The notes under the pieces were generated by a model that worked only from the letters and a program-made list of their open reading frames with translations, did no database searches and had not been told where the DNA came from. The translations under genes and the position numbers were made by a program. DNA of 64,000 bases, from sequence record OR805293.1. The stretch is one strand, 5' to 3'. Position 1 is the first letter of the stretch. Each line of letters begins with the position of its first letter. Shown here in pieces: positions 803 to 60,419 of this stretch.

Positions 803-854
803 GTATGCATGTTAAGTAATTCCGCTTAACAGTAACTAAGCAAAGAAAAAGAAA

Positions 855-1097
855 ATGGCAAAAGAAAAAGTAACTTTCCCTATCTATAAATTCAACCGCA
901 TTGCAGAAATGGCTGACAAATATAATTCTAAAACTAAGACACAACGGTTTCAAGTTATGTCTAAGTTTAAAGGAACTCAGCTCATAGAAGTTGGACTGTA
1001 CGATACTAAAGATAAGAAATATGTACTAGTAGATACACGCCATTATACAATGGATGATTGTATAAAAGAAATGGAATCTATGATTTCAGGAAAGTAA
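855..1097 (+). CDS. Hypothetical protein (80 aa)
   Basis: ATG start, own promoter and downstream terminator. Confidence 0.7.
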   Translation: MAKEKVTFPIYKFNRIAEMADKYNSKTKTQRFQVMSKFKGTQLIEVGLYDTKDKKYVLVDTRHYTMDDCIKEMESMISGK

Positions 1098-1111
1098 CTT
1101 AAACAGAAGGG

Positions 1112-1141
1112 AGGGGGTTAAGTAACTAACCCCCTATTTTT
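1112..1141 (+). terminator. Intrinsic terminator
   Basis: AGGGGGTTA/TAACCCCCT stem followed by a T-run. Confidence 0.75.
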
Positions 1142-10977: not shown

Positions 10978-11883
10978 CATAATAAAACTAAAGGGCGTAT
11001 GTAACAAAACAGACGTTCTCCTAAGTGTTTTAAAGTTTTTGCTTAGGAAGACCCAGTTGTATGTTTAAAGGGTGAACGGTAACGGGCATTCTTGTTTAAG
11101 ACTAGTTCTTATGAAGACATTGGCAACTAACATAGCAGCTTTGTTCCATCATTGGATATTGGTAGTAGAAACTATCCCCATCGTGCCTTTACTGTAGTAC
11201 CGTTAGAGACGGAGATAACGCAGGAAAAAAGGTTATTTAAATTATGATTTTGGGTGCTGCAGAACACTTTCGTAAACAAAAGGAATATAGTTTACGTATA
11301 CACAACGGGAACGGGAAAAAGCTTTTTAAGCAAAAACGAGTCCCTGGTAATTGGTGTTTAACGGGAGTGACGTCCCAAATGTTATTCATTGATTAACACT
11401 GTAAGAAGGTTGTAAGGGTTATTGTGTTCGAAGTGGTTTACACAACTGTTCTTCCTACATTTATGTACAGAAGTGTAAACGAAAGGATGTTGCTCTGGTA
11501 GAAAAAGATCAACGTACTTTATGACACTATCCTTGTGACATATGTACTTGTACCAACAACAGCCGCAGGTTACGGATATGGTATTACAAACTGTACTGCG
11601 GTTCCGGGAGTTGAAAGTGGATGTTAGCTTAGGTGGCTGTTTGCTTAATTATAATGTTTAATTTAGGCAATATAAGCGTCGGGTGAGGCTTTCGTAGGTT
11701 GCGTGTTTATGCTACGGTGTAAATGGGCTAGACTACTGGCGCATACATGAGTATTGTAGGATTGGCGCTTTAATAAAGAAATTTGTTAAAGTTTGAGTTT
11801 AGCTCCCCGCTCATTAGCAATAAACGTTGCTAGTCGATAGTATACCCACGCCTAAATAATGCCGTCATTGTTTAGTTTTTTTT
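10978..11883 (+). ncRNA. Candidate large (~900 nt) structured non-coding RNA
   Basis: Promoter and terminator bound an ORF-free, GC-elevated region with many helices, G-U pairs favouring the + strand and a terminal helix 10993-10998/11848-11853. Confidence 0.7.
11855..11883 (+). terminator. Putative terminator of the ncRNA
   Basis: AAATAATG-CCGT-CATTGTTT stem then AG and T8. Confidence 0.5.
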
Positions 11884-11888
11884 AAAAA

Positions 11889-12173
11889 ATATAATTGTCA
11901 ATTATATGTCGTACGCATCTACCCCGAAAAGGGGTAGATGTTTATGACTTTCGTTTACACTCATGTCATAATCAGTACACGCCATTTTAGGCCATTCTAC
12001 ATCAATACACTGCTTCTAGCAGTGTATTGGACATACAAAATAATCTTAAATTATATCAAATTTGTTTAATTACTTTAATTTTGTTACTTTAGTAACTTGT
12101 ATTTTGTTTATATGAGTTGTAGTTTACGAAAACGAATATAAACAAAATACATATGTGAACTGTAGTTCACATA
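11889..12173. repeat. Cluster of perfect inverted repeats
   Basis: Stems 11889-96/11900-07 (8 bp), 11916-25/11931-40 (10), 12003-13/12019-29 (11), 12098-113/12136-151 (16), 12152-60/12165-73 (9). Confidence 0.85.
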
Positions 12174-12285
12174 CTTACTAACGTTGTATATTACGGTAAT
12201 TCTATAAAATATCTCTATATAATTATAAACGTTTTATGGCATACTACGACTGAACGAAATTGAAAATTAACTAGAGATTTAATTA

Positions 12286-19869: not shown

Positions 19870-20976
19870 ATGACAGTGAAGTTCGAACATATCCTAAACG
19901 AACAAACTTCTTTAAGTGCAGAAGTAAAATCTGCTATTACAGAAGCATGGGAAGCTCGTATAGGACAAGTAAAAGAAGAACTCACTGCTGAGCTTCGTGA
20001 AGAATTTGCTCGTAAGTTTGCACACGACAAAGAACAACTTGTCGAAGCAATGGACAAATTCTTAGAAGAAAAAATCCGCAGTGAAATCGAAGAATTTGCT
20101 CAAGACAAACGAGAACTAGCTGCCGAACGAGTTCAAGCTAAAATGCAAGTAAAAGAACATATCGAAATGCTCGATAAGTTCTTAATAGATGCAGTTTCTA
20201 AAGAAGTCAAAGAACTTCGTGAAGATCGCCGTGCAATTAAAGGCAATCTAGAGAAACTAGAAGAGTTTGCACTCACTAATCTTGCAACCGAAGTTAAAGA
20301 GCTTCGGGAAGAAAAGCAAGCATTAGTTCGTCAGAAAGTTAAATTAATTAGTGAAGCAAAAAAACAACTAGCAGAAACTAAAAAGCAGTTCATAAAGAAA
20401 GCGTCGCAAATAGTAGACACAAACATTAATAGCGTATTGCAAGAAGAAATAAAGCAATATAAAGAAGATATTGATGCTGCTCGTCGAAATGACTTTGGAC
20501 GTCGTTTATTTGAAGCTTTTGCTGCAGAGTACATGACTTCGCATCTAAACGAAGGTAGTGAACTTAAGAAACTCAAAAATATTCTTATACAAAAAGAAGA
20601 AGCCCTTAATGAAGCTTTATCTCATGTAGAAGAACGTGAAGCACTTGCAGAAAATCTACGCACTCGCATTTCTGTATTAGAAGAGCGTGTTAAACGTAGC
20701 TCTGTAATGTCTGAATTGTTAGCTCCGCTAAATAAAGAAAAGCGTAGTGTAATGCAAGATCTTTTAGAGTCTGTAAAAACAGAACATTTAAAAGTTGCAT
20801 ATAACAAATATTTGCCAGCAGTGCTAGATTGTAGTGCAGCACCGGCAAGTAAAAAAGAAGCTCTAACTGAGTCAGCAAGAGCTGTAAAAACTGGTAACAG
20901 GGCGTCTAGCGTTGCCCAGCAAGATGACTCATCTGTAGGCGTTGAAGAATTAAGACGCCTAGCAGGCATTAAGTAA
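19870..20976 (+). CDS. gp22: Prohead scaffolding protein
   Basis: Coiled-coil Glu/Lys-rich protein between gp21 and gp23. Confidence 0.85.
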   Translation: MTVKFEHILNEQTSLSAEVKSAITEAWEARIGQVKEELTAELREEFARKFAHDKEQLVEAMDKFLEEKIRSEIEEFAQDKRELAAERVQAKMQVKEHIEMLDKFLIDAVSKEVKELREDRRAIKGNLEKLEEFALTNLATEVKELREEKQALVRQKVKLISEAKKQLAETKKQFIKKASQIVDTNINSVLQEEIKQYKEDIDAARRNDFGRRLFEAFAAEYMTSHLNEGSELKKLKNILIQKEEALNEALSHVEEREALAENLRTRISVLEERVKRSSVMSELLAPLNKEKRSVMQDLLESVKTEHLKVAYNKYLPAVLDCSAAPASKKEALTESARAVKTGNRASSVAQQDDSSVGVEELRRLAGIK

Positions 20977-35705: not shown

Positions 35706-38068
35706 TATAGATTTACCCAGGATGAAAAATATACTTGTAATGATGCTAATCCCGGATCGTCATATTCCCTCGAATAATCTTGATAACCGGTTCCGTCGTT
35801 GTTATTAAAATTACTGTTTAATGTACTAGCAACGTCAAAGTATGATAATGTTTTGTTATAGCAATATATAGACACTGCTCTAAATGCTTTAGAATAGTTA
35901 ACAACATCTCCCTCTATGGCACCTACGTGCCCCTCTGACATACATTGTGTCATAACAACATAATTTGTATTTGTTGGACGCAAAGTAGTAAAATAGAATC
36001 TATATAATCCTGTTCCTAATTTTGTTATAGATAAGTTTAAAGTGTTTATTACAAAGAAGGAACCGCCCGTAAGGTTTGTGTCTGAGAATGATGCCAGACC
36101 TTTTGGCATATCTATTTCTACTTTCCAGTCATATCCTAAATAAGTTACTAATTGGTCCCTGCTAGCAAAACGAACATAATTGTCATTGGTATTATTGTTT
36201 CTAAATGTTACTTGGGCATTTATTGACATAGGGTCTGCATTAGTGTATGTCATACTAAATGAAGATGCAGATAGATACCCGCCGTTTGCATCAGGAAGAT
36301 TAGAAGGTGTATATCTTACTGCTATTGTGTTGGCACCCGGACTAGTTGAATTTATTTTACCGTTAAGTAAATATGAATCTACGGCAGTACCGTTCCACGC
36401 CAATGCTCCTACTTCGGCAGCGGTCGGCGGCCGTCTGTCGTGGAATGCTAAATTACCAGAACCTATATATAGATTGTCTGCTTTAAATGATATGATACTA
36501 TTTGCTACTAATGGTGTATTTATTGCACCAGTATTATAGAAGACAAACTGTATTCCGTTATCTAATGTATTGTTAGTAACCATATTCATACTAACAGCAG
36601 TAGTATTATTTTGAGAATGAATATCTGTAACAGTACCGCCTAGTATTAGACTAGTTCCATAATTGGGTTTATATGCTAATCTGAAACTATTATCATTCAT
36701 TACTATTACATCTCCTGATGTAACAGATGAAGTTATAGACGAAGTAACAAACGGTGTTTGTTTTTTAACGTAAGCTGTGCTATCTAACCCGCCTAGTAAT
36801 TCTGAATCTGGAGAAGAACTATTTGATTTATCTACGAATAGATTATTATATTCTTGGGAATTGTATGTTTCGTTTTTACCATATATAGATAAATTATTTC
36901 TAGCGGCTGCCTTATTTAAAACATCTGCTAGGTTCAGTGTTTTATCGAATGTATTTACGTTATCTACTAATCCCAGACCTATCTGTTCTTTTGTAACTTG
37001 ATGAGGGTCGTTTTTATCATTAATGTGAGCACTAAGTAAATCTAATGTGCCCTGAGTTAATGGATGCCATTTTGCTAGATTTGTAAATTCACCGGGTTCT
37101 CCTACATATACATAAAATGATCCTTGTGTCCCGGGTCCCTCTGTTTTATACCATAGTTGTCCTTTTATAGCATTTTGGGGAGGAGAAGAACTAGCAAAGT
37201 TTTCTACCATCCATATCATGGATTCACTAAATGCTTTTTCGTAACCTGCCGAATTATATCCTGGCATAGATATAGAAAGTAAGTTAGAAGAAATATAGTT
37301 ATCAGGTACATTTAATCCTGGAATCTTGTTATAGCACTTTGCAGAAAAAGATAATACCTCGAAAGTACATAAATCCTGATTACCTGATACAAATCCAAAT
37401 AATGCAGATGTTTTAAAATCAGTTAGTGTATCATCGTTTAGATCTATAGTAAACACCGAGTTATCTATTATTACGTTAGAATTCCAGTCGGAACACTTAG
37501 CTGTTATTTTATTATTTTCTCTAATTACATTAATAATTGTATATCTATTTGACCAACCGAGATACCCTGTAGATGATGTAGAAGTAGCCCCAGCAGGACT
37601 ATTAATTCCTATTGTTTTACTAGAAAGAATCGTTCTAGTTTTATTGTTATCTAAAATTAGTTCCCAATTCCTTCCGGATCCGCTGCTAGATGTGTTACCT
37701 AATGACCGGACAGCAGATATATATTTTCCTTTTTGTCCAGCAACACACAAACCTAACCTGTTATTTCTTATAGAATTGCTAGATATTTTTATTGTAATAT
37801 TAAAATCACTAACTTGATCCATGTATAACGCATAGCTATATAACGATGCTGCATTAGTTGATATAGGATCGGGAGTTCTTGTGTAAGAAAGAATAGAAGT
37901 AGCTGACCATCCTGCAGTGACGCCGCCTATTGCTTTTCCTTCCCATGCATCATACAAGTTAACTGATGTAGCTTTTGACCAATCGGAAACAACTTCTTGG
38001 TAACTAGGAAAAGAAGTTAGTTCTCTATTTTGGTAATAATTATTTGATAAACGTAATTCGTAACCCAT
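35705..38068 (-). CDS. Tail fibre/receptor-binding protein, paralog 1, with extra N-terminal beta-rich domain
   Basis: Same modules after ~270 extra residues; ATG 38068 preferred over TTG 38080. Confidence 0.7.
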   Translation of the reverse strand: MGYELRLSNNYYQNRELTSFPSYQEVVSDWSKATSVNLYDAWEGKAIGGVTAGWSATSILSYTRTPDPISTNAASLYSYALYMDQVSDFNITIKISSNSIRNNRLGLCVAGQKGKYISAVRSLGNTSSSGSGRNWELILDNNKTRTILSSKTIGINSPAGATSTSSTGYLGWSNRYTIINVIRENNKITAKCSDWNSNVIIDNSVFTIDLNDDTLTDFKTSALFGFVSGNQDLCTFEVLSFSAKCYNKIPGLNVPDNYISSNLLSISMPGYNSAGYEKAFSESMIWMVENFASSSPPQNAIKGQLWYKTEGPGTQGSFYVYVGEPGEFTNLAKWHPLTQGTLDLLSAHINDKNDPHQVTKEQIGLGLVDNVNTFDKTLNLADVLNKAAARNNLSIYGKNETYNSQEYNNLFVDKSNSSSPDSELLGGLDSTAYVKKQTPFVTSSITSSVTSGDVIVMNDNSFRLAYKPNYGTSLILGGTVTDIHSQNNTTAVSMNMVTNNTLDNGIQFVFYNTGAINTPLVANSIISFKADNLYIGSGNLAFHDRRPPTAAEVGALAWNGTAVDSYLLNGKINSTSPGANTIAVRYTPSNLPDANGGYLSASSFSMTYTNADPMSINAQVTFRNNNTNDNYVRFASRDQLVTYLGYDWKVEIDMPKGLASFSDTNLTGGSFFVINTLNLSITKLGTGLYRFYFTTLRPTNTNYVVMTQCMSEGHVGAIEGDVVNYSKAFRAVSIYCYNKTLSYFDVASTLNSNFNNNDGTGYQDYSREYDDPGLASLQVYFSSWVNL

Positions 38069-38092
38069 GACAATGCTCAATATTCTTTATGA

Positions 38093-38100
38093 TATTTATC
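38093..38100 (-). promoter_or_regulatory. Putative late promoter GATAAATA
   Basis: 25 nt upstream of the fibre operon. Confidence 0.7.
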
Positions 38101-38175
38101 ATAGTAATTTTAGGTAAATTTATGAAATTATATTTATTTTCTTTTATAAAACATAAAATATAGTTGTTTAATTTA

Positions 38176-38459
38176 ACTGGGTGTAATATAATTTGTAGTG
38201 TATGCAATACATTTGCATATATACCAAGCACTGTATGGTGAGTTGCATACAGCGATGGGCAATCGTAGTGCCGACATTGATCTAGTATGATCTGAAATAG
38301 GTCCCTTACGCCGAGGTAAGGCTATCTGGCACGGATAGTAGTGGATGTGTATGTTCGAAATAACGATATCATATTTTAGACATACGCCGCCGTCAGCATT
38401 TTTAGTTTGCAACTGCTGATATCTTTAAGTTTTGTTGATGGCCGGGGGTGGTGCCCAGT
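38176..38459 (+). ncRNA. Candidate ~285-nt multi-hairpin non-coding RNA
   Basis: GC-elevated island with six hairpins closed by ACUGGGUGU/GUGCCCAGU; wobble pairs favour + strand. Confidence 0.6.
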
Positions 38460-38663
38460 GCATTTTTATTATAGAGTTATTGTGTAAAAGAAATAAATGT
38501 GATTAAAGACGAGGTTCTTTTCTAAAACTGTTTCTAAAAATAATTGCGTTAAAACCTTGGGTTTAGTTAATGCATTATATATGCTATATAATTATCCCTA
38601 CATAAACATGTATGTTTAACTTGTTTAGTTAACAACAAAATATGCAAATTAAGGAATTAACTG

Positions 38664-38831
38664 ATGACTAAATTTAATAAAAAATCGTTAGATACGTATG
38701 AAGATAGAGAAGATTATAGAGATGAAGAAACCGGTGACAGGTTAAATAATAAGAAATCTGAACCTAAAAAAAATAATACTGATTATAAGCCGTTTGGTAA
38801 AATTACCAACCGCTATAATAATGATAATTAA
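38664..38831 (+). CDS. Small charged hypothetical protein (55 aa), not in ORF track
   Basis: AAGGAA RBS; MTKFNKKSLDTYEDREDY...NRYNNDN*. Confidence 0.6.
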   Translation: MTKFNKKSLDTYEDREDYRDEETGDRLNNKKSEPKKNNTDYKPFGKITNRYNNDN

Positions 38832-38859
38832 ATAGTAAATATTATTATCATTTACTACG

Positions 38860-39279
38860 GTGATAATAATGATAGAAACTATTTTAACTTCGAGAGTATT
38901 TGCTTATGTAGTTTGCATAGGTATAATATCGTTAGCAATAACGCTCTCATATCAAAAATATCAAAAGCTTATTAGTGTAAATAAATCTCTTGAACAATCT
39001 ATAGAAACGTTAACTAATGATAATAATTCATTGCAGTTAACTATTTCTGAACAAAATAAAAAGATTGAAACATATATTCAACTTAGATTATATGAAGAAT
39101 CTATAGCCAAACAAAAAGCAGAATCACATGCTGCTTTAGAAAAACAATTACAAGATACTAAATCTCAGTTAAATGAATTAATAGAACGTAGAAAGAATGA
39201 GGCACCAAATGATCAAAGTGTGTTATGCTCTACTGTCAGGATTGATCCTGCTTTACGCAACTGGATGCTCGCAAACTAA
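38860..39279 (+). CDS. Inner-membrane spanin (Rz-like)
   Basis: N-terminal TM helix then coiled coil; overlaps downstream lipoprotein gene. Confidence 0.75.
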   Translation: MIIMIETILTSRVFAYVVCIGIISLAITLSYQKYQKLISVNKSLEQSIETLTNDNNSLQLTISEQNKKIETYIQLRLYEESIAKQKAESHAALEKQLQDTKSQLNELIERRKNEAPNDQSVLCSTVRIDPALRNWMLAN

Positions 39280-39526
39280 ACCAGTTAAATCTGTAGTGAT
39301 AGAAAAGGAAATAGTTCCTGTTCTTCCGCCAGATTCTCTTATAGTATATTGTTACGAAAATGAAAATCCCGATACGTATGGCGAAACGGTAGGTTCGGTT
39401 AAAAAACTAAAATCTATAATTAAAAATTCTTGTAATAAAAATATGAAAGATATAGAACTTTGGAAATCTGAAGTTAAAAAACTATATCCTACTGCGAATG
39501 ACTTAGAAATAAAAAAGCAGCCTTAA
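39209..39526 (+). CDS. Outer-membrane spanin lipoprotein (Rz1-like)
   Basis: Signal MIKVCYALLSGLILLYATG-C; VLPPDSLIVYC; overlaps i-spanin 3' end. Confidence 0.75.
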   Translation: MIKVCYALLSGLILLYATGCSQTKPVKSVVIEKEIVPVLPPDSLIVYCYENENPDTYGETVGSVKKLKSIIKNSCNKNMKDIELWKSEVKKLYPTANDLEIKKQP

Positions 39527-39537
39527 GCTGCTTTTTT
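39511..39537. terminator. Bidirectional terminator
   Basis: AAAAAAGCAGC/GCTGCTTTTTT between spanin and holin. Confidence 0.85.
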
Positions 39538-39786
39538 ATTGTCCGAGTCGCATGGGTTTATTTTATCTTTTATATTCTGTTTTATATAACTTCCTGCAAT
39601 ACCTAGTATACTAAACAAACATACTAATCCTATAAATACGTGAGTTTCTATCAAAGAACTAAATCCAATAATTGCCGGAACACCGTATTGTGCAATAGCC
39701 ATTAATAAATTCACTACATGGAAAATATAAGAATATCTTTTATATATTTTAGTCCAATTATCTGTTAATTTAAGTTTCCTAAACAT
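39523..39786 (-). CDS. Putative holin (2 TM helices)
   Basis: 87 aa, two hydrophobic helices, charged tail; overlaps endolysin stop. Confidence 0.65.
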   Translation of the reverse strand: MFRKLKLTDNWTKIYKRYSYIFHVVNLLMAIAQYGVPAIIGFSSLIETHVFIGLVCLFSILGIAGSYIKQNIKDKINPCDSDNKKAA

Positions 39787-44159: not shown

Positions 44160-44322
44160 TATAAAAGAATTGATAGAAAAGAAGAGCATTAATATAGCCA
44201 TACTAGAATTTTCTGGCTGGTACTTAAAGACTAATATTGGTATTTTTACATTAATAGGAGACCAGTATTATAAAGATGGAACACCTATTTCTAAAAAAGA
44301 AATTGAGGAACTTCTAAAATGA
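44143..44322 (+). CDS. Small hypothetical protein (59 aa), not in ORF track
   Basis: MSSLTDIKELIEKK...EELLK*; overlaps neighbours at both ends. Confidence 0.6.
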   Translation: MSSLTDIKELIEKKSINIAILEFSGWYLKTNIGIFTLIGDQYYKDGTPISKKEIEELLK

Positions 44323-44606
44323 AACGAGTTGCATTATTGATACCATTGTGTGTTTTATATGGTTGCAGTTCTAATCCATATGAAAACAATATAGTCAATA
44401 ATGCAACTCGTTATGTAACAGTAGAAACACCAGAAACAATAAGCAGAAACATTGCAAACCGATATGTATTAAATACCGATGAATTTCCTGCAAAACCCCA
44501 CGACACATATAAAATGTATGGCGAACAAATTAAATCTACCTTTAGGGGAAATGCAAGAAGATTAATAGAATCTACTATTATTTCTATATTTAGAAATAAT
44601 AGATAA
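44319..44606 (+). CDS. Putative lipoprotein
   Basis: Signal peptide with lipobox LYG-C. Confidence 0.7.
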   Translation: MKRVALLIPLCVLYGCSSNPYENNIVNNATRYVTVETPETISRNIANRYVLNTDEFPAKPHDTYKMYGEQIKSTFRGNARRLIESTIISIFRNNR

Positions 44607-56555: not shown

Positions 56556-58172
56556 ATGTCTATTGTATGTAAAATTTGTAATAAATCATTTCCTAGTATG
56601 ATTACAAGCACACATCTAAAAACACATAACATCACTACTGCAGAATACAAAGATCTTTATGGAAAATATTCTCTTGTATCAGATGAATATAGATCAAAGC
56701 GGTCAGAACAGTCATCTGGCATTAATAATCCTAATTATGGAAATAAATGGTCAGACAGCATGAAAGAATCTATGTCTAATAAAAAATCCGGAACTATTCC
56801 GTGGAATAAAGGCATAGAGTTACACGATACTACTATGTACGTGAAATCTGCAGAACAGAGAGAACTAAAGTACAAAGAAGGGATACTAACTAGGAAATCA
56901 TATGTTAGAACTGTAGAAATAAATAAAAAAATTTCTGATAGTGTGAAGAAGTATGCTGCAGAAAATAAAGAAGAAATAAAACAGAGAAGTGCCAAAGCAA
57001 AATATACATATAGTACAAAGAAAACGTTAGGGTTAGTGCAAATACGAAAAGGATATAAGTTAACAAAATCACACAAAGAAATAGCTATACAAACATTAAA
57101 CAATTATAGGGCTTCTAAAATAGCTGAATCTAATAAACAAATAGAAAGTAATATATCTCTTGCAAATCTAACACTATTAAATGACATAAATGAAAACAGC
57201 TTAGTGTTAAGGTGTAATATATGTAATAATGAATGTTCTTTTACAAAACAATATTTTAGAGCTAGTAAATTTAAAATAGAATTATGTCCTGTATGTTATC
57301 CTAGAAATAGTAATAGATCTGAAAAAGAAAAAGAATTAGAATATTTTATAACAAGTTTAGGTATTTCGTGTATAAATTCTGCACGTATAAACAATAAAGA
57401 AATAGATATATTTTGTAAAGAATTAAATATTGGATTTGAATTTAACGGATTATACTGGCATAGTGAGGATGTTTTAGAGTATTCTGGGTATAGTAAAACA
57501 AAAGATTACGAAAAGAAAATATTTTTTAGAGATAAAGGAATTAGATTAATTCAAATATTTGAAGATGAGTGGGACTTAAAGCAAGATATAGTAAAGAGTA
57601 GAATAAGAGCTATATTAGGAAAAACAGAACACAAAATATATGCAAGGAAATGTGCTGTTAAAGAAATAAATTCTAAAGTTGCAAATGATTTTGTAGAAAA
57701 AACACATTTACAAGGTAAAGGTAGAGCAAATGTAAGATTAGGGTTGTATTATAACAATGAACTAGTTTCTGTAATGACATTTTTAAATAAAGATATTACT
57801 AATAAAACATCGAGCTGTCAGATAAATCGTTTTAGTGTAAAACATAATACATCTATCCCCGGCGCCGCTGGAAAATTATTTGCTTACTATATAAACAATT
57901 ATAATCCGTCTAGTGTTATTTCGTATGCAGATTCTCGCTGGTCTGATGGTAATTTGTATGAACAGCTAGGATTTAAATTAGATAAACAGACACTCCCTAA
58001 TTACTGGTATATAAAAGATAATGATCTTAAAAGATATCATAGATACAATTTTAGAAAAGATAAGTTGCCTGAAACTTTACTAACAGAAAAAGAATATATG
58101 GATAGTTTGGGATGGAATAGAATATGGGATTCGGGATCTACTAAATGGGTTTGGACAAATAAAGGGGCATAA
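56556..58172 (+). mobile_element. Free-standing Hef-like homing endonuclease gene (paralog of 22302)
   Basis: Zinc finger CKIC..HLKTH; NUMOD-like IPWNKG; EIDIFCKELNIGFEFNGLYWHS; IYARKC; WDSGSTKWVW. Confidence 0.75.
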
Positions 58173-58186
58173 TGCCCCTTTATTTG
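58156..58186 (+). terminator. Intrinsic terminator
   Basis: CAAATAAAGGGGCAT/ATGCCCCTTTATTTG. Confidence 0.8.
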
Positions 58187-58215
58187 TATCCTATAATGAA
58201 AAATTGTTAGTTACT

Positions 58216-58223
58216 GATAAATA
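58216..58223 (+). promoter_or_regulatory. Putative late promoter GATAAATA
   Basis: Upstream of tail tube gene. Confidence 0.7.
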
Positions 58224-58260
58224 TGTTTATCGTAATAACGAGACATTAATAGGAGAATGT

Positions 58261-58881
58261 ATGGCAACATTAGACAAATTTGGGGTACCAAGTTCGGCAG
58301 GTTCAGAACGCGGTATTTTGCAACCCAAGCTCCAGTACAAGTTTCGCGTGAGTTTTGATGGTTTTGGCGATGGATCTAATTCTCGCCAGTTAACCCAGAG
58401 CGTAGTTTCTGTCGAAAGACCGAAAATAAACCATGCGTCGACTGCTGTTCATTCGTATAACTCTGTAGCATATGCTATGGGCAAACACGAATGGCAAACT
58501 ATCGAAATTGTATTGCGTGACGATATTCAAAACTCAGTTGTTAATGTAGTTGGTAAACAATTGCAGAAACAAATGAACCATTTTGAACAATCTAGCCCAG
58601 TAGCTGGTAGAAACTATAAATTTACTATGAGAATAGAATCTCTAGACGGAAACAACAATACTGCACCATTAGAATACTGGGATGCAGAAGGTTGTTTTTT
58701 ACTTGATGTAAACTATGGTTCTCGTGCATATGATAGCTCTGAACTTACCTTAATAACCCTTACTGTTCGTGCAGATAACTATACTCATCATGCAGGCGGC
58801 AACGAAGTTGCACTCGGCGGCGATCCGTTTACTGACGACGATGCCGGATTACGCGGTGCACCTGGTGCTCGTGTAAACTAA
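58261..58881 (+). CDS. gp19: Tail tube protein
   Basis: LQPKLQYKFRVSF...GKHEWQTIEIVLRDD; ATG 58261 after AGGAG; follows sheath. Confidence 0.85.
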   Translation: MATLDKFGVPSSAGSERGILQPKLQYKFRVSFDGFGDGSNSRQLTQSVVSVERPKINHASTAVHSYNSVAYAMGKHEWQTIEIVLRDDIQNSVVNVVGKQLQKQMNHFEQSSPVAGRNYKFTMRIESLDGNNNTAPLEYWDAEGCFLLDVNYGSRAYDSSELTLITLTVRADNYTHHAGGNEVALGGDPFTDDDAGLRGAPGARVN

Positions 58882-58889
58882 TAAGAAAT

Positions 58890-58916
58890 CTGCAAGCTAT
58901 TTTACTTAGCTTGCAG
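58890..58916 (+). terminator. Hairpin/terminator after tail tube
   Basis: CTGCAAGCTA/TAGCTTGCAG 10-bp stem. Confidence 0.6.
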
Positions 58917-58940
58917 TTATTCTTTTTATTGGATTTATAT

Positions 58941-60419
58941 ATGGCATTTGATGATATATTCGGTACAATAGCCGGCGCTGCTGGTGATATATTTGGGGCA
59001 ACAGTGGGAGAAGCAGGAAATATTTTGTCTTCTGTTGCTACCCGGTCTGCTAAGAAATTTTTAGGCGGTTTAATTGGCGACGGGCATGGCGCATATCTAA
59101 GAGATAGTAGACATGCAACATATAATTTTGGTCTTAGGGGTTCGTATATACAACAGAACTATCCTAGGTCTAAGTTTCAATATCTTGTAAAAATAAACTA
59201 TAATACTATAGATCCGGTAAAATCGTTTGTTGATACTTATTTAAATAGAGATGAACAAGATATGATAGTTCCTCTAATAAAACGTATCGATATGCCATCT
59301 ATGCAAATAGATACAGAAAAATTAAATCAATATAATAAATGGCGTATTTCTCAAACAAAGATAAAATTCCAGCCTATTACAATGGTGTTACACGATGTAG
59401 TAGATGGAAAAACATTACGTTTTTGGGAAATGTATTATGAATATTATTTTAATGATGGTGTTTACGCCAAGAAAACATCAGATTCTATAAGTAATTTTGA
59501 TCCCATTAGAAATACATTAAGAAGGGGCGAGTTAAACGTATCTGAGTTTTATAATGATATTATCTCTAAAGAAGGTGTTTTTAAACGAGATTTTGGATTT
59601 AGGTTAGATACTCAAGTGTTTAATACAACTTCGTTTATAGGAAAATATAGTAGATATTTGTTTGACTCTATTGATATATATCAGGTTCACGGACAATCAT
59701 ATTCTAGAGCAAGATTAGTAAATCCCAGAATAACAGATTTTAGACATGATGCATTAGCATATGACAATTCTAGCGATTTAATGGAATTAACATTTACATT
59801 TGAATACGAAGATGTAGTGTATGATAACTTTGTTAGGCCATTGGCTGAAACTGAACTTGAATTTTATGATAATGCTAATAATTTAGAATTAGATTATCAA
59901 CCTGCCCGTCCGCCAGTTAGTGTTAGGGTAAGAAACGACAGTACTGAGGGTGGTTTCGGCAGATCTTCGTCTGGATTAGGTAATGTATTGGGTGATATTA
60001 CGGGGGATATATTCGGCGGAATTCGGTCTGGTGTATCTACAGTTTTAGATGCAACTGGTGTAAATGGTGTGTTAGATAATATAGGAGTAGGCGCAGTATT
60101 AGGAAGCGCTGCTAATAGCGTATTAGGAAATATTGAGCGAAATGTAACAGACTATGTTACTACTTTTCCTGAAAATGCAGCCAGGGCAGTAGGTGAAAGT
60201 ATATTTACAGGAGAAGTAGAATTCCCGGTAGATCCGAAAGGTTCTATGAGAAAAATATTAGATCAAGCAAAATCAGAAACTACTGGAACTATACGAAGAA
60301 CATTTGAAACTGGTGTAAATACTGCTATAACTGGTGTTTTAAATGGCGCAGGAAAAATTATAGATAATCCCAGGGGATCTAGAAATACAAACGTATCTAA
60401 CAGGAGTGTTGGATTATAA
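58941..60419 (+). CDS. Tail-tube-fold protein (gp19/gp54-like) with Gly-rich C-terminus
   Basis: IDMPSMQIDTEKLNQYN...FQPITMVLHD...FWEMYYEYYF tube-like core. Confidence 0.65.
   Translation: MAFDDIFGTIAGAAGDIFGATVGEAGNILSSVATRSAKKFLGGLIGDGHGAYLRDSRHATYNFGLRGSYIQQNYPRSKFQYLVKINYNTIDPVKSFVDTYLNRDEQDMIVPLIKRIDMPSMQIDTEKLNQYNKWRISQTKIKFQPITMVLHDVVDGKTLRFWEMYYEYYFNDGVYAKKTSDSISNFDPIRNTLRRGELNVSEFYNDIISKEGVFKRDFGFRLDTQVFNTTSFIGKYSRYLFDSIDIYQVHGQSYSRARLVNPRITDFRHDALAYDNSSDLMELTFTFEYEDVVYDNFVRPLAETELEFYDNANNLELDYQPARPPVSVRVRNDSTEGGFGRSSSGLGNVLGDITGDIFGGIRSGVSTVLDATGVNGVLDNIGVGAVLGSAANSVLGNIERNVTDYVTTFPENAARAVGESIFTGEVEFPVDPKGSMRKILDQAKSETTGTIRRTFETGVNTAITGVLNGAGKIIDNPRGSRNTNVSNRSVGL

Follow-up and report, generated by a model that had tools for sequence, protein, structure and literature searches.

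A GC-rich island lies in a gene-free gap of 583 nt (38081-38663) in the last 64 kb of the record OR805293 of the Pseudomonas jumbo phage Deifobo, and the question raised by this locus is whether the island is the gene of a folded RNA, a small protein gene, the leader of its neighbours, a DNA element or a relic. Deifobo is a PA5oct-type phage of the genus Wroclawvirus, and these 64 kb constitute the window analysed here, to which positions refer unless another record is named. PA5oct-type phages are considered for therapy and serve as models of jumbo-phage biology, and one of them, Paride, kills dormant P. aeruginosa. Their ncRNAs are few. A first-pass annotation of the window had proposed a stable small RNA of unknown class at 38176-38459.

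The locus and its counterpart in PA5oct

The gap ranks second in size among the gene-free stretches of the densely packed 64 kb, in which the other divergent gaps measure 100-136 nt. As had been noticed in the first-pass annotation, the island is elevated in GC (0.41-0.44 versus 0.21-0.31 in the flanks) and is situated between fibre and lysis genes, with a fibre-like gene on its left and the spanin genes on its right. The GC skew over the island is positive, as in the + strand units, and its + strand is G-rich. The coordinates of the features are collected in Table 1. The AT-rich tract between the fibre-like gene and the island probably holds the promoter and leader of that gene, and promoter-like sites were found on the - strand at 38126-38098 and 38118-38089.

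The spanin pair was recognised by matches to PHROG 739/89 (E 1e-4), PHROG 456 (E 6e-11) and Pfam PF23793 LysC (E 9e-13), and downstream of it a holin-like gene and an endolysin gene follow on the - strand. These spanin genes are labelled 'structural protein' in PA5oct and 'hypothetical' in Deifobo and look like an overlapping Rz/Rz1 pair, and a weak resemblance to holins (PHROG 1356, E 7.5e-4) was seen in the ORF next after them (39523-39786, - strand). Annotation of the lysis cassette seems to be incomplete in the genus Wroclawvirus. An AU-rich hairpin on the + strand at 38841-38871 (-8.5 kcal/mol, z -2.8) covers both the start of the Rz-like gene and its ribosome-binding region and may give translational coupling or occlusion of this gene.

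A blastn search with the 583-nt gap showed 100% identity to Deifobo OR805293 and 97.6-99.3% identity to ten other Wroclawvirus records (PA5oct, MIJ3, Paride and others). The match in PA5oct covers 582 of the 583 nt with 98.5% identity, the flanking genes and the strand are the same, and an ncRNA feature overlaps the matched stretch. This feature is listed in the PA5oct GenBank record MK797984 as EST35_0168, 103065..103668 (+), "putative lncRNA; ncRNA003; annotation based on RNA-Seq data". In the study of Lood et al. 2020 (PMC7318152), ncRNA003 is one of four published PA5oct ncRNAs, appears in Table 1 at 103065...103368 (+), is described as an actively transcribed region without a putative ORF or known promoter, and accounted, in strand-specific RNA-seq (5, 15 and 25 min), for 0.01, 0.05 and 0.03% of the reads from the phage in the early, middle and late samples, respectively. 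Its abundance is several-fold under that of the average gene per kb. Judged from this match, the island is the Deifobo orthologue of PA5oct ncRNA003, that is, the same and already known element.

The locus is consequently no new element, being among the four published ncRNAs, and strand, ends and expression are for the Deifobo island taken from the published annotation of its relative. Whereas the PA5oct publication gave coordinates and read share only, the analyses of fold, promoter and selection are added here for Deifobo. They amount to a testable gene model (promoter and start at ~38199, a six-hairpin core at 38198-38445, no terminator) and to the finding of purifying selection on the core. 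The published RNA bears out one part of the first-pass reading, a non-coding + strand transcript of unclassified type, given the orthology with ncRNA003 and the lack of Rfam and tRNA matches described below. The word stable is not borne out, in view of the low share of reads and the lack of a bounding terminator.

The annotated start of ncRNA003 (103065) corresponds to 38211 in the Deifobo window, inside hairpin H1, and the annotated 3' end corresponds to 38514 according to the paper (103368) or to 38815 according to GenBank (103668). The two 3' coordinates differ by exactly 300 nt. Since GenBank and Table 1 agree in the coordinates of ncRNA001 and ncRNA002, one of the two 3' ends of ncRNA003 is apparently a one-digit typing error; only with the GenBank end does the annotated RNA reach into the 55-aa ORF.

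Table 1. Position and strand of the features at and around the island in the 64-kb window of Deifobo.
Feature	Position	Strand	Basis or remark
Divergent tail-fibre-like / YomR-like virion protein gene, 787 aa	35705..38068	-	left neighbour
AT-rich, nearly invariant divergent control region	38069..38163	.	1 variable site in 107 nt (38069-38175)
Candidate sigma70-type promoter: -35 TTGTTT 38164-69, 17-nt spacer, perfect -10 TATAAT 38187-92	38164..38192	+	sequence
ORF79, 79 aa, TTG start	38173..38412	-	'hypothetical protein' in some automatic annotations
5' arm of the closing helix of the first-pass annotation (partner 38451-38459)	38176..38184	+	in promoter spacer
Structured RNA core, six hairpin arms	38198..38445	+	MFE, pair probabilities, strand asymmetry, conservation
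Arm H1	38198..38222	+	MFE fold
Arm H2	38231..38252	+	MFE fold
Arm H3	38253..38279	+	MFE fold
Arm H4	38280..38346	+	MFE fold
Arm H5	38347..38387	+	MFE fold
Arm H6	38389..38442	+	MFE fold
Fast-evolving 3' tail and spacer, including U-run 38463-38467	38427..38573	+	variation at or above neutral rate
55-aa ORF (PA5oct gp169), first gene of + strand unit	38664..38831	+	variable sites all at third codon positions
Overlapping spanin pair: Rz-like i-spanin 38869-39279, Rz1/LysC o-spanin 39197-39526	38869..39526	+	PHROG, Pfam

Fold and conservation of the island

The + strand of the interval 38176-38459 folds with -93.6 kcal/mol (z -3.27), and none of 200 shuffles was as good; the first-pass annotation had named a fold no better than dinucleotide-shuffled controls as a refutation. 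The - strand of the same interval reached -67.2 kcal/mol (z -1.99). The core, folded on the + strand without the closing helix proposed earlier, had an MFE of -80.7 kcal/mol and a z-score of -3.67, again with 0 of 200 shuffles as good, and the pair probabilities of its helices were mostly at least 0.9.

Every helix of the first-pass annotation was found in the sequence and the helix list at the coordinates that had been given for it. The helices 38201-07/38213-19, 38231-37/38246-52, 38304-09/38316-21 and 38347-54/38380-87 are present, helix 38322-27/38333-38 occurs as an alternative to the MFE pairing, and helix 38392-98/38414-20 occurs as an alternative to the long MFE stem 38389-98/38433-42. 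The 9-bp helix 38176-84/38451-59, including 3 G.U pairs, exists as sequence too, but that it closes the array could not be upheld: its 5' arm is located in the spacer of a candidate promoter, upstream of the predicted start, and the array folds without it. With a start at ~38199 this arm would not be transcribed, and it is therefore probably outside the transcript. A G>A change at 38179 in phage PAC2 gives an A.C mismatch and breaks the closing helix. The structure first proposed is thus largely right, the closing helix excepted.

The gain of G-U pairs on the + strand relative to mismatches on the - strand, also remarked on earlier, was confirmed, as G.U pairs make up 17 of the 91 on the + strand and H4-H6 are structured only on this strand. 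With arm boundaries chosen from the fold itself, the z-scores of H4, H5 and H6 were -2.4, -4.3 and -3.0 on the + strand versus +0.2, -0.95 and -0.25 on the - strand. The raw difference in folding between the strands is mostly compositional, whereas the arm-by-arm asymmetry is not. Together with the G.U pairs, the strand asymmetry of H4-H6 argues for an RNA of the + strand and against a DNA cruciform or a structure in a - strand mRNA.

The palindrome GAUAUC is found both in the apical loop of H5 and in an unpaired part of H6 (38361-38371 and 38417-38427). The two stretches can pair over 7-10 nt (-7.3 kcal/mol) and are invariant in all isolates except for the last base, and a kissing contact between the loops or a dimerisation site is possible according to this folding model. 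When the whole window was scanned with adjustment for composition, the island ranked only 44th of 1796 windows (z -2.26; top 2.5%). Other windows of 284 nt, 11716-12283 (+), 44305-44588 (-), 853-1136 (-), 20094-20377 (+), 58150-58433 (+) and 58789-59072 (+), had z-scores of -3.3 to -4.4, beyond that of the island, or equalled it in raw MFE (-93.3 at 58789), and the first of these overlaps or adjoins a candidate large RNA.

Conservation, likewise named in the first-pass annotation, was assessed in an alignment of 3.58 kb around the locus from ten distinct Wroclawvirus genomes. In the flanking genes 6.8% of the third codon positions and 0.9% of positions 1+2 are variable. The stretch 38180-38426 contained only 3 variable sites in 247 (1.2%; p=3e-5 versus the third-position rate), and 38210-38391 a single one in 182. 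Purifying selection on the core matches in strength that on the non-synonymous positions of coding sequence. The number of variable sites rises to 5 of 33 in 38427-38459 and to 13 of 114 in 38460-38573 (17 of 204 in 38460-38663), so that 8-11% of the sites vary in the spacer adjoining the core, and the conserved block ends at ~38426 and not at 38459 where the interval had first been closed. The island is without indels across the 10 isolates, which come from Europe and Asia.

The variable sites in the body of the RNA are all in loops or change a G.U pair to A-U or G-C. In the covariation test, which comprised only 5 distinct sequences, 74 of 75 pairs never vary. The single varying pair, 38392:38439, changes one side at a time, its G.U being replaced by A-U in PAC2 and by G-C in MIJ3. 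Four substitutions (T>C, C>T, G>C, T>C) are crowded into 11 nt of the G-rich tail (38439-38449) in MIJ3 and in no other phage, and may reflect either recombination over a short patch or clustered mutation immediately beyond the conserved core.

No relative of the island was found beyond the genus. In the Rfam 15 families there were no matches at the gathering threshold in the whole window and none at E<=10 in 38000-38700, where rRNA models did not match at E<=10 either, and ARAGORN detected no tRNA or tmRNA gene in the window and only noise in the gap at the 80% threshold. These searches agree with the unknown class stated in the first-pass annotation. A 'distant' blastn search of 50,697 phage records returned only the 11 Wroclawvirus records, and no homologue of the island was found in a plasmid collection or by exact-pattern scans of IMG/VR and metagenome contigs. 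A 19-nt match in an Acidobacteriaceae MAG, from a scan of prokaryote genome contigs, was discarded, as its flanks are unalignable and about 4 such matches are expected by chance. The phage family comprises a single genus, and for the fibre-like protein, the 55-aa ORF and Rz no relatives were found outside it, so that synteny offers no route to distant relatives. Within the 288-kb genome, blastn, nhmmer --max and a covariance model recovered the island itself and no paralogue.

Transcript ends and rival explanations

Taken together, we put the probability at roughly 0.6 that the island is genuinely a gene, confined to the genus, whose + strand transcript is a folded non-coding RNA orthologous to PA5oct ncRNA003, with a start at ~38199, an array of six arms and a ragged 3' end. 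The first-pass annotation had seen no strong + strand promoter, and this view has to be revised: a candidate TTGTTT-N17-TATAAT is present at 38164-38192, one of only 7 TTGNNN-N16-18-TATAAT sites on the + strand of the 64-kb window (4 on the - strand). Its -35 hexamer has just 3 of the 6 consensus bases. Neither hexamer varies among the 10 genomes, and the sole variable sites nearby, 38176 and 38179, are both in the spacer. The predicted start at ~38199 would be the first base of H1, 12 nt upstream of the start annotated in PA5oct by RNA-seq. The role of 38164-38192 as the promoter and the start at ~38199 are, like the 3' behaviour of the RNA, inferred from the sequence.

Of the promoter and terminator pair that marks a free-standing sRNA gene, a candidate promoter is present and a terminator-like hairpin with a U-run was not found in 37900-38900. 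The local folds ahead of the U-run 38463-38467 are no better than shuffles, and where terminators do occur in the window they consist of a tight GC hairpin with a T-run behind it. Because no intrinsic terminator was seen, some read-through in the direction of the 55-aa ORF is likely, and it fits the GenBank coordinates of ncRNA003. According to the model, the host RNA polymerase would initiate at ~38199 from a promoter of moderate strength within the divergent control region common to the fibre gene, and the G.U-rich RNA would fold during synthesis into its six arms with the first hairpin at the very 5' end. Lacking an intrinsic terminator, the transcripts would have a ragged 3' end (~38445-38514), and some would probably continue downstream through the 55-aa ORF and the spanin genes Rz/Rz1.

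The same observations bear on the possibility that the island is purely a cis-acting 5' leader, the structured front of a ~600-nt mRNA for the 55-aa ORF that possibly continues into the spanin genes, and that it controls stability, read-through or timing of the operon. The island is directly upstream of the 55-aa ORF on the same strand, no terminator-like site is found between 38445 and 38664, the PA5oct GenBank feature 103065..103668 covers most of the ORF, and the abundance of ncRNA003 is low and mRNA-like with its highest value in mid infection (PMC7318152). The table of the paper, however, ends the RNA at 103368 (38514 in the window) and lists loci without plausible ORFs (PMC7318152). Moreover, ~115 nt of neutral spacer precede the conserved region adjoining the ORF, which has a separate perfect TATAAT of its own at 38587-92, and the sole 10-nt complementarity between the island and the region upstream of the ORF (38211-20 with 38640-49) is broken in MIJ3 by 38644 G>A. 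A pure leader is therefore considered unlikely.

We regard it as very unlikely that the conserved block codes for a small protein on the - strand, ORF79, and that the fold of the + strand is incidental. That the ORF exists and is probably spurious agrees with the first-pass annotation, to which it looked spurious; the pattern of synonymous sites, on the other hand, speaks in its favour. Of its five variable sites, four are third positions with synonymous changes and one gives an N>D replacement (Fisher p=0.044, position 3 versus positions 1+2), the frame is intact in 10 of 10 genomes, the right edge of the conserved block (38426) is near the start of the ORF, and some automatic annotations call it. 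The variation at the island's ten variable sites is accounted for just as well by the promoter-plus-hairpin model. The codon score of ORF79, 0.07, is not decisive, because curated early PA5oct genes also score low, and since codon usage differs in the early-gene region of Deifobo the argument from codon usage against ORF79 is weakened.

Against ORF79 stands its TTG start without a Shine-Dalgarno sequence, where 31 of 31 curated comparison CDS start with ATG, and its atypical composition, with GC2 above GC1 and G at only 19% of first codon positions. It had no Pfam or PHROG match and no relative among 5.8 billion protein clusters, and it is unannotated in five records. The AlphaFold2 model has a mean pLDDT of 44.8, a low confidence which is uninformative rather than decisive. 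The conservation reaches ~90 nt past the stop codon, the positive GC skew of the island is like that of + strand units, and the published transcription is on the opposite strand, where the PA5oct authors saw no plausible ORF (PMC7318152). Several public annotations thus probably mis-call a protein on the strand opposite to the RNA.

A non-functional relic or transcriptional noise, i.e. a decayed gene or a mobile-element remnant that folds by chance, would be consistent with the low expression in PA5oct and with the lack of homologues, paralogues and covariation. This explanation is highly improbable in view of a core as constrained as non-synonymous positions between DNA that evolves at the neutral rate on both sides, and kept free of indels in the isolates of both continents. 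Very unlikely, finally, is an element acting as DNA and not as functional RNA (a replication origin, a cluster of protein-binding palindromes or an R-loop primer site), for although an invariant AT-rich tract adjoins the inverted-repeat block in this divergent intergenic region, the + strand is G-rich and a TGTATG/CATACA stem motif is common to three hairpins, the half-site spacing differs among these three, H4-H6 fold only on the + strand via G.U pairs which cruciforms and symmetric protein sites do not need, and the cumulative GC skew tracks gene orientation with no origin signature.

Possible function and relation to known elements

As the gene of a folded RNA, the island would give rise to a weakly expressed middle to late transcript whose array acts on, or leads, the adjacent spanin unit. 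That its function is to regulate this neighbouring late lysis unit, as an upstream leader or as a small regulator beside it, is a guess to which we would give somewhat less than even odds, and a trans-acting role in protein binding or as a decoy is about as likely. It is a more speculative proposal, and one that we consider rather improbable, that the six-arm RNA founds a new class of regulatory RNA in phages, so far limited to one genus, and that, made from the control region between fibre and lysis genes, it would set timing or level of the spanin operon, either in cis by acting on RNA polymerase in a read-through or antitermination-like mode or via binding of a phage or host protein.

The lambda pR' '6S' RNA is a short leader transcript upstream of a phage lysis cassette, and put of HK022 is a cis-acting antiterminator RNA. 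The Deifobo RNA resembles them as a non-coding transcript just upstream of lysis genes on the same strand, from which read-through is plausible without a terminator. It differs in that the island has no Rfam similarity, that no terminator, Q-like factor or evidence of antitermination was found, and that a 200-nt spacer with its own -10 element separates the island from the first ORF. By analogy, the comparison offers a lead on a possible mode of action and does not imply membership.

An msr-msd ncRNA of a retron was suggested by the likeness of a folded RNA of ~250 nt with ends able to pair, as in the closing helix proposed earlier. A retron or DGR element was rejected, however, as the PF00078 reverse transcriptase is absent from the whole 288-kb OR805293 record while the control genomes match, and as the closing helix is probably outside the transcript. 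Comparable to the island are ncRNA001, ncRNA002 and ncRNA004 of PA5oct-type phages, which are likewise GC-enriched, folded and ORF-free islands in AT-rich jumbo-phage genomes. While ncRNA001 and ncRNA002 are abundant in PA5oct (PMC7318152), the orthologue of the Deifobo island makes up only 0.01-0.05% of the reads, and the island has no paralogue.

Two further observations were made on the genome. The T4-late-promoter-like octamer TATAAATA is depleted in the whole window, with 9 matches versus 23.5 +/- 4.7 expected and at least 9 in 100 of 100 shuffles, and the depletion may hint at a functional signal that is avoided elsewhere. Outside the window, three stretches of Deifobo OR805293 at ~173.7-177.2, 185.2-190.2 and 195.5-199.2 kb have a GC content of 0.53-0.75 in a genome of 33% GC. 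Nothing in these stretches was accepted by a codon model built from long phage ORFs, and they look like foreign, host-like GC-rich genes in the early region.
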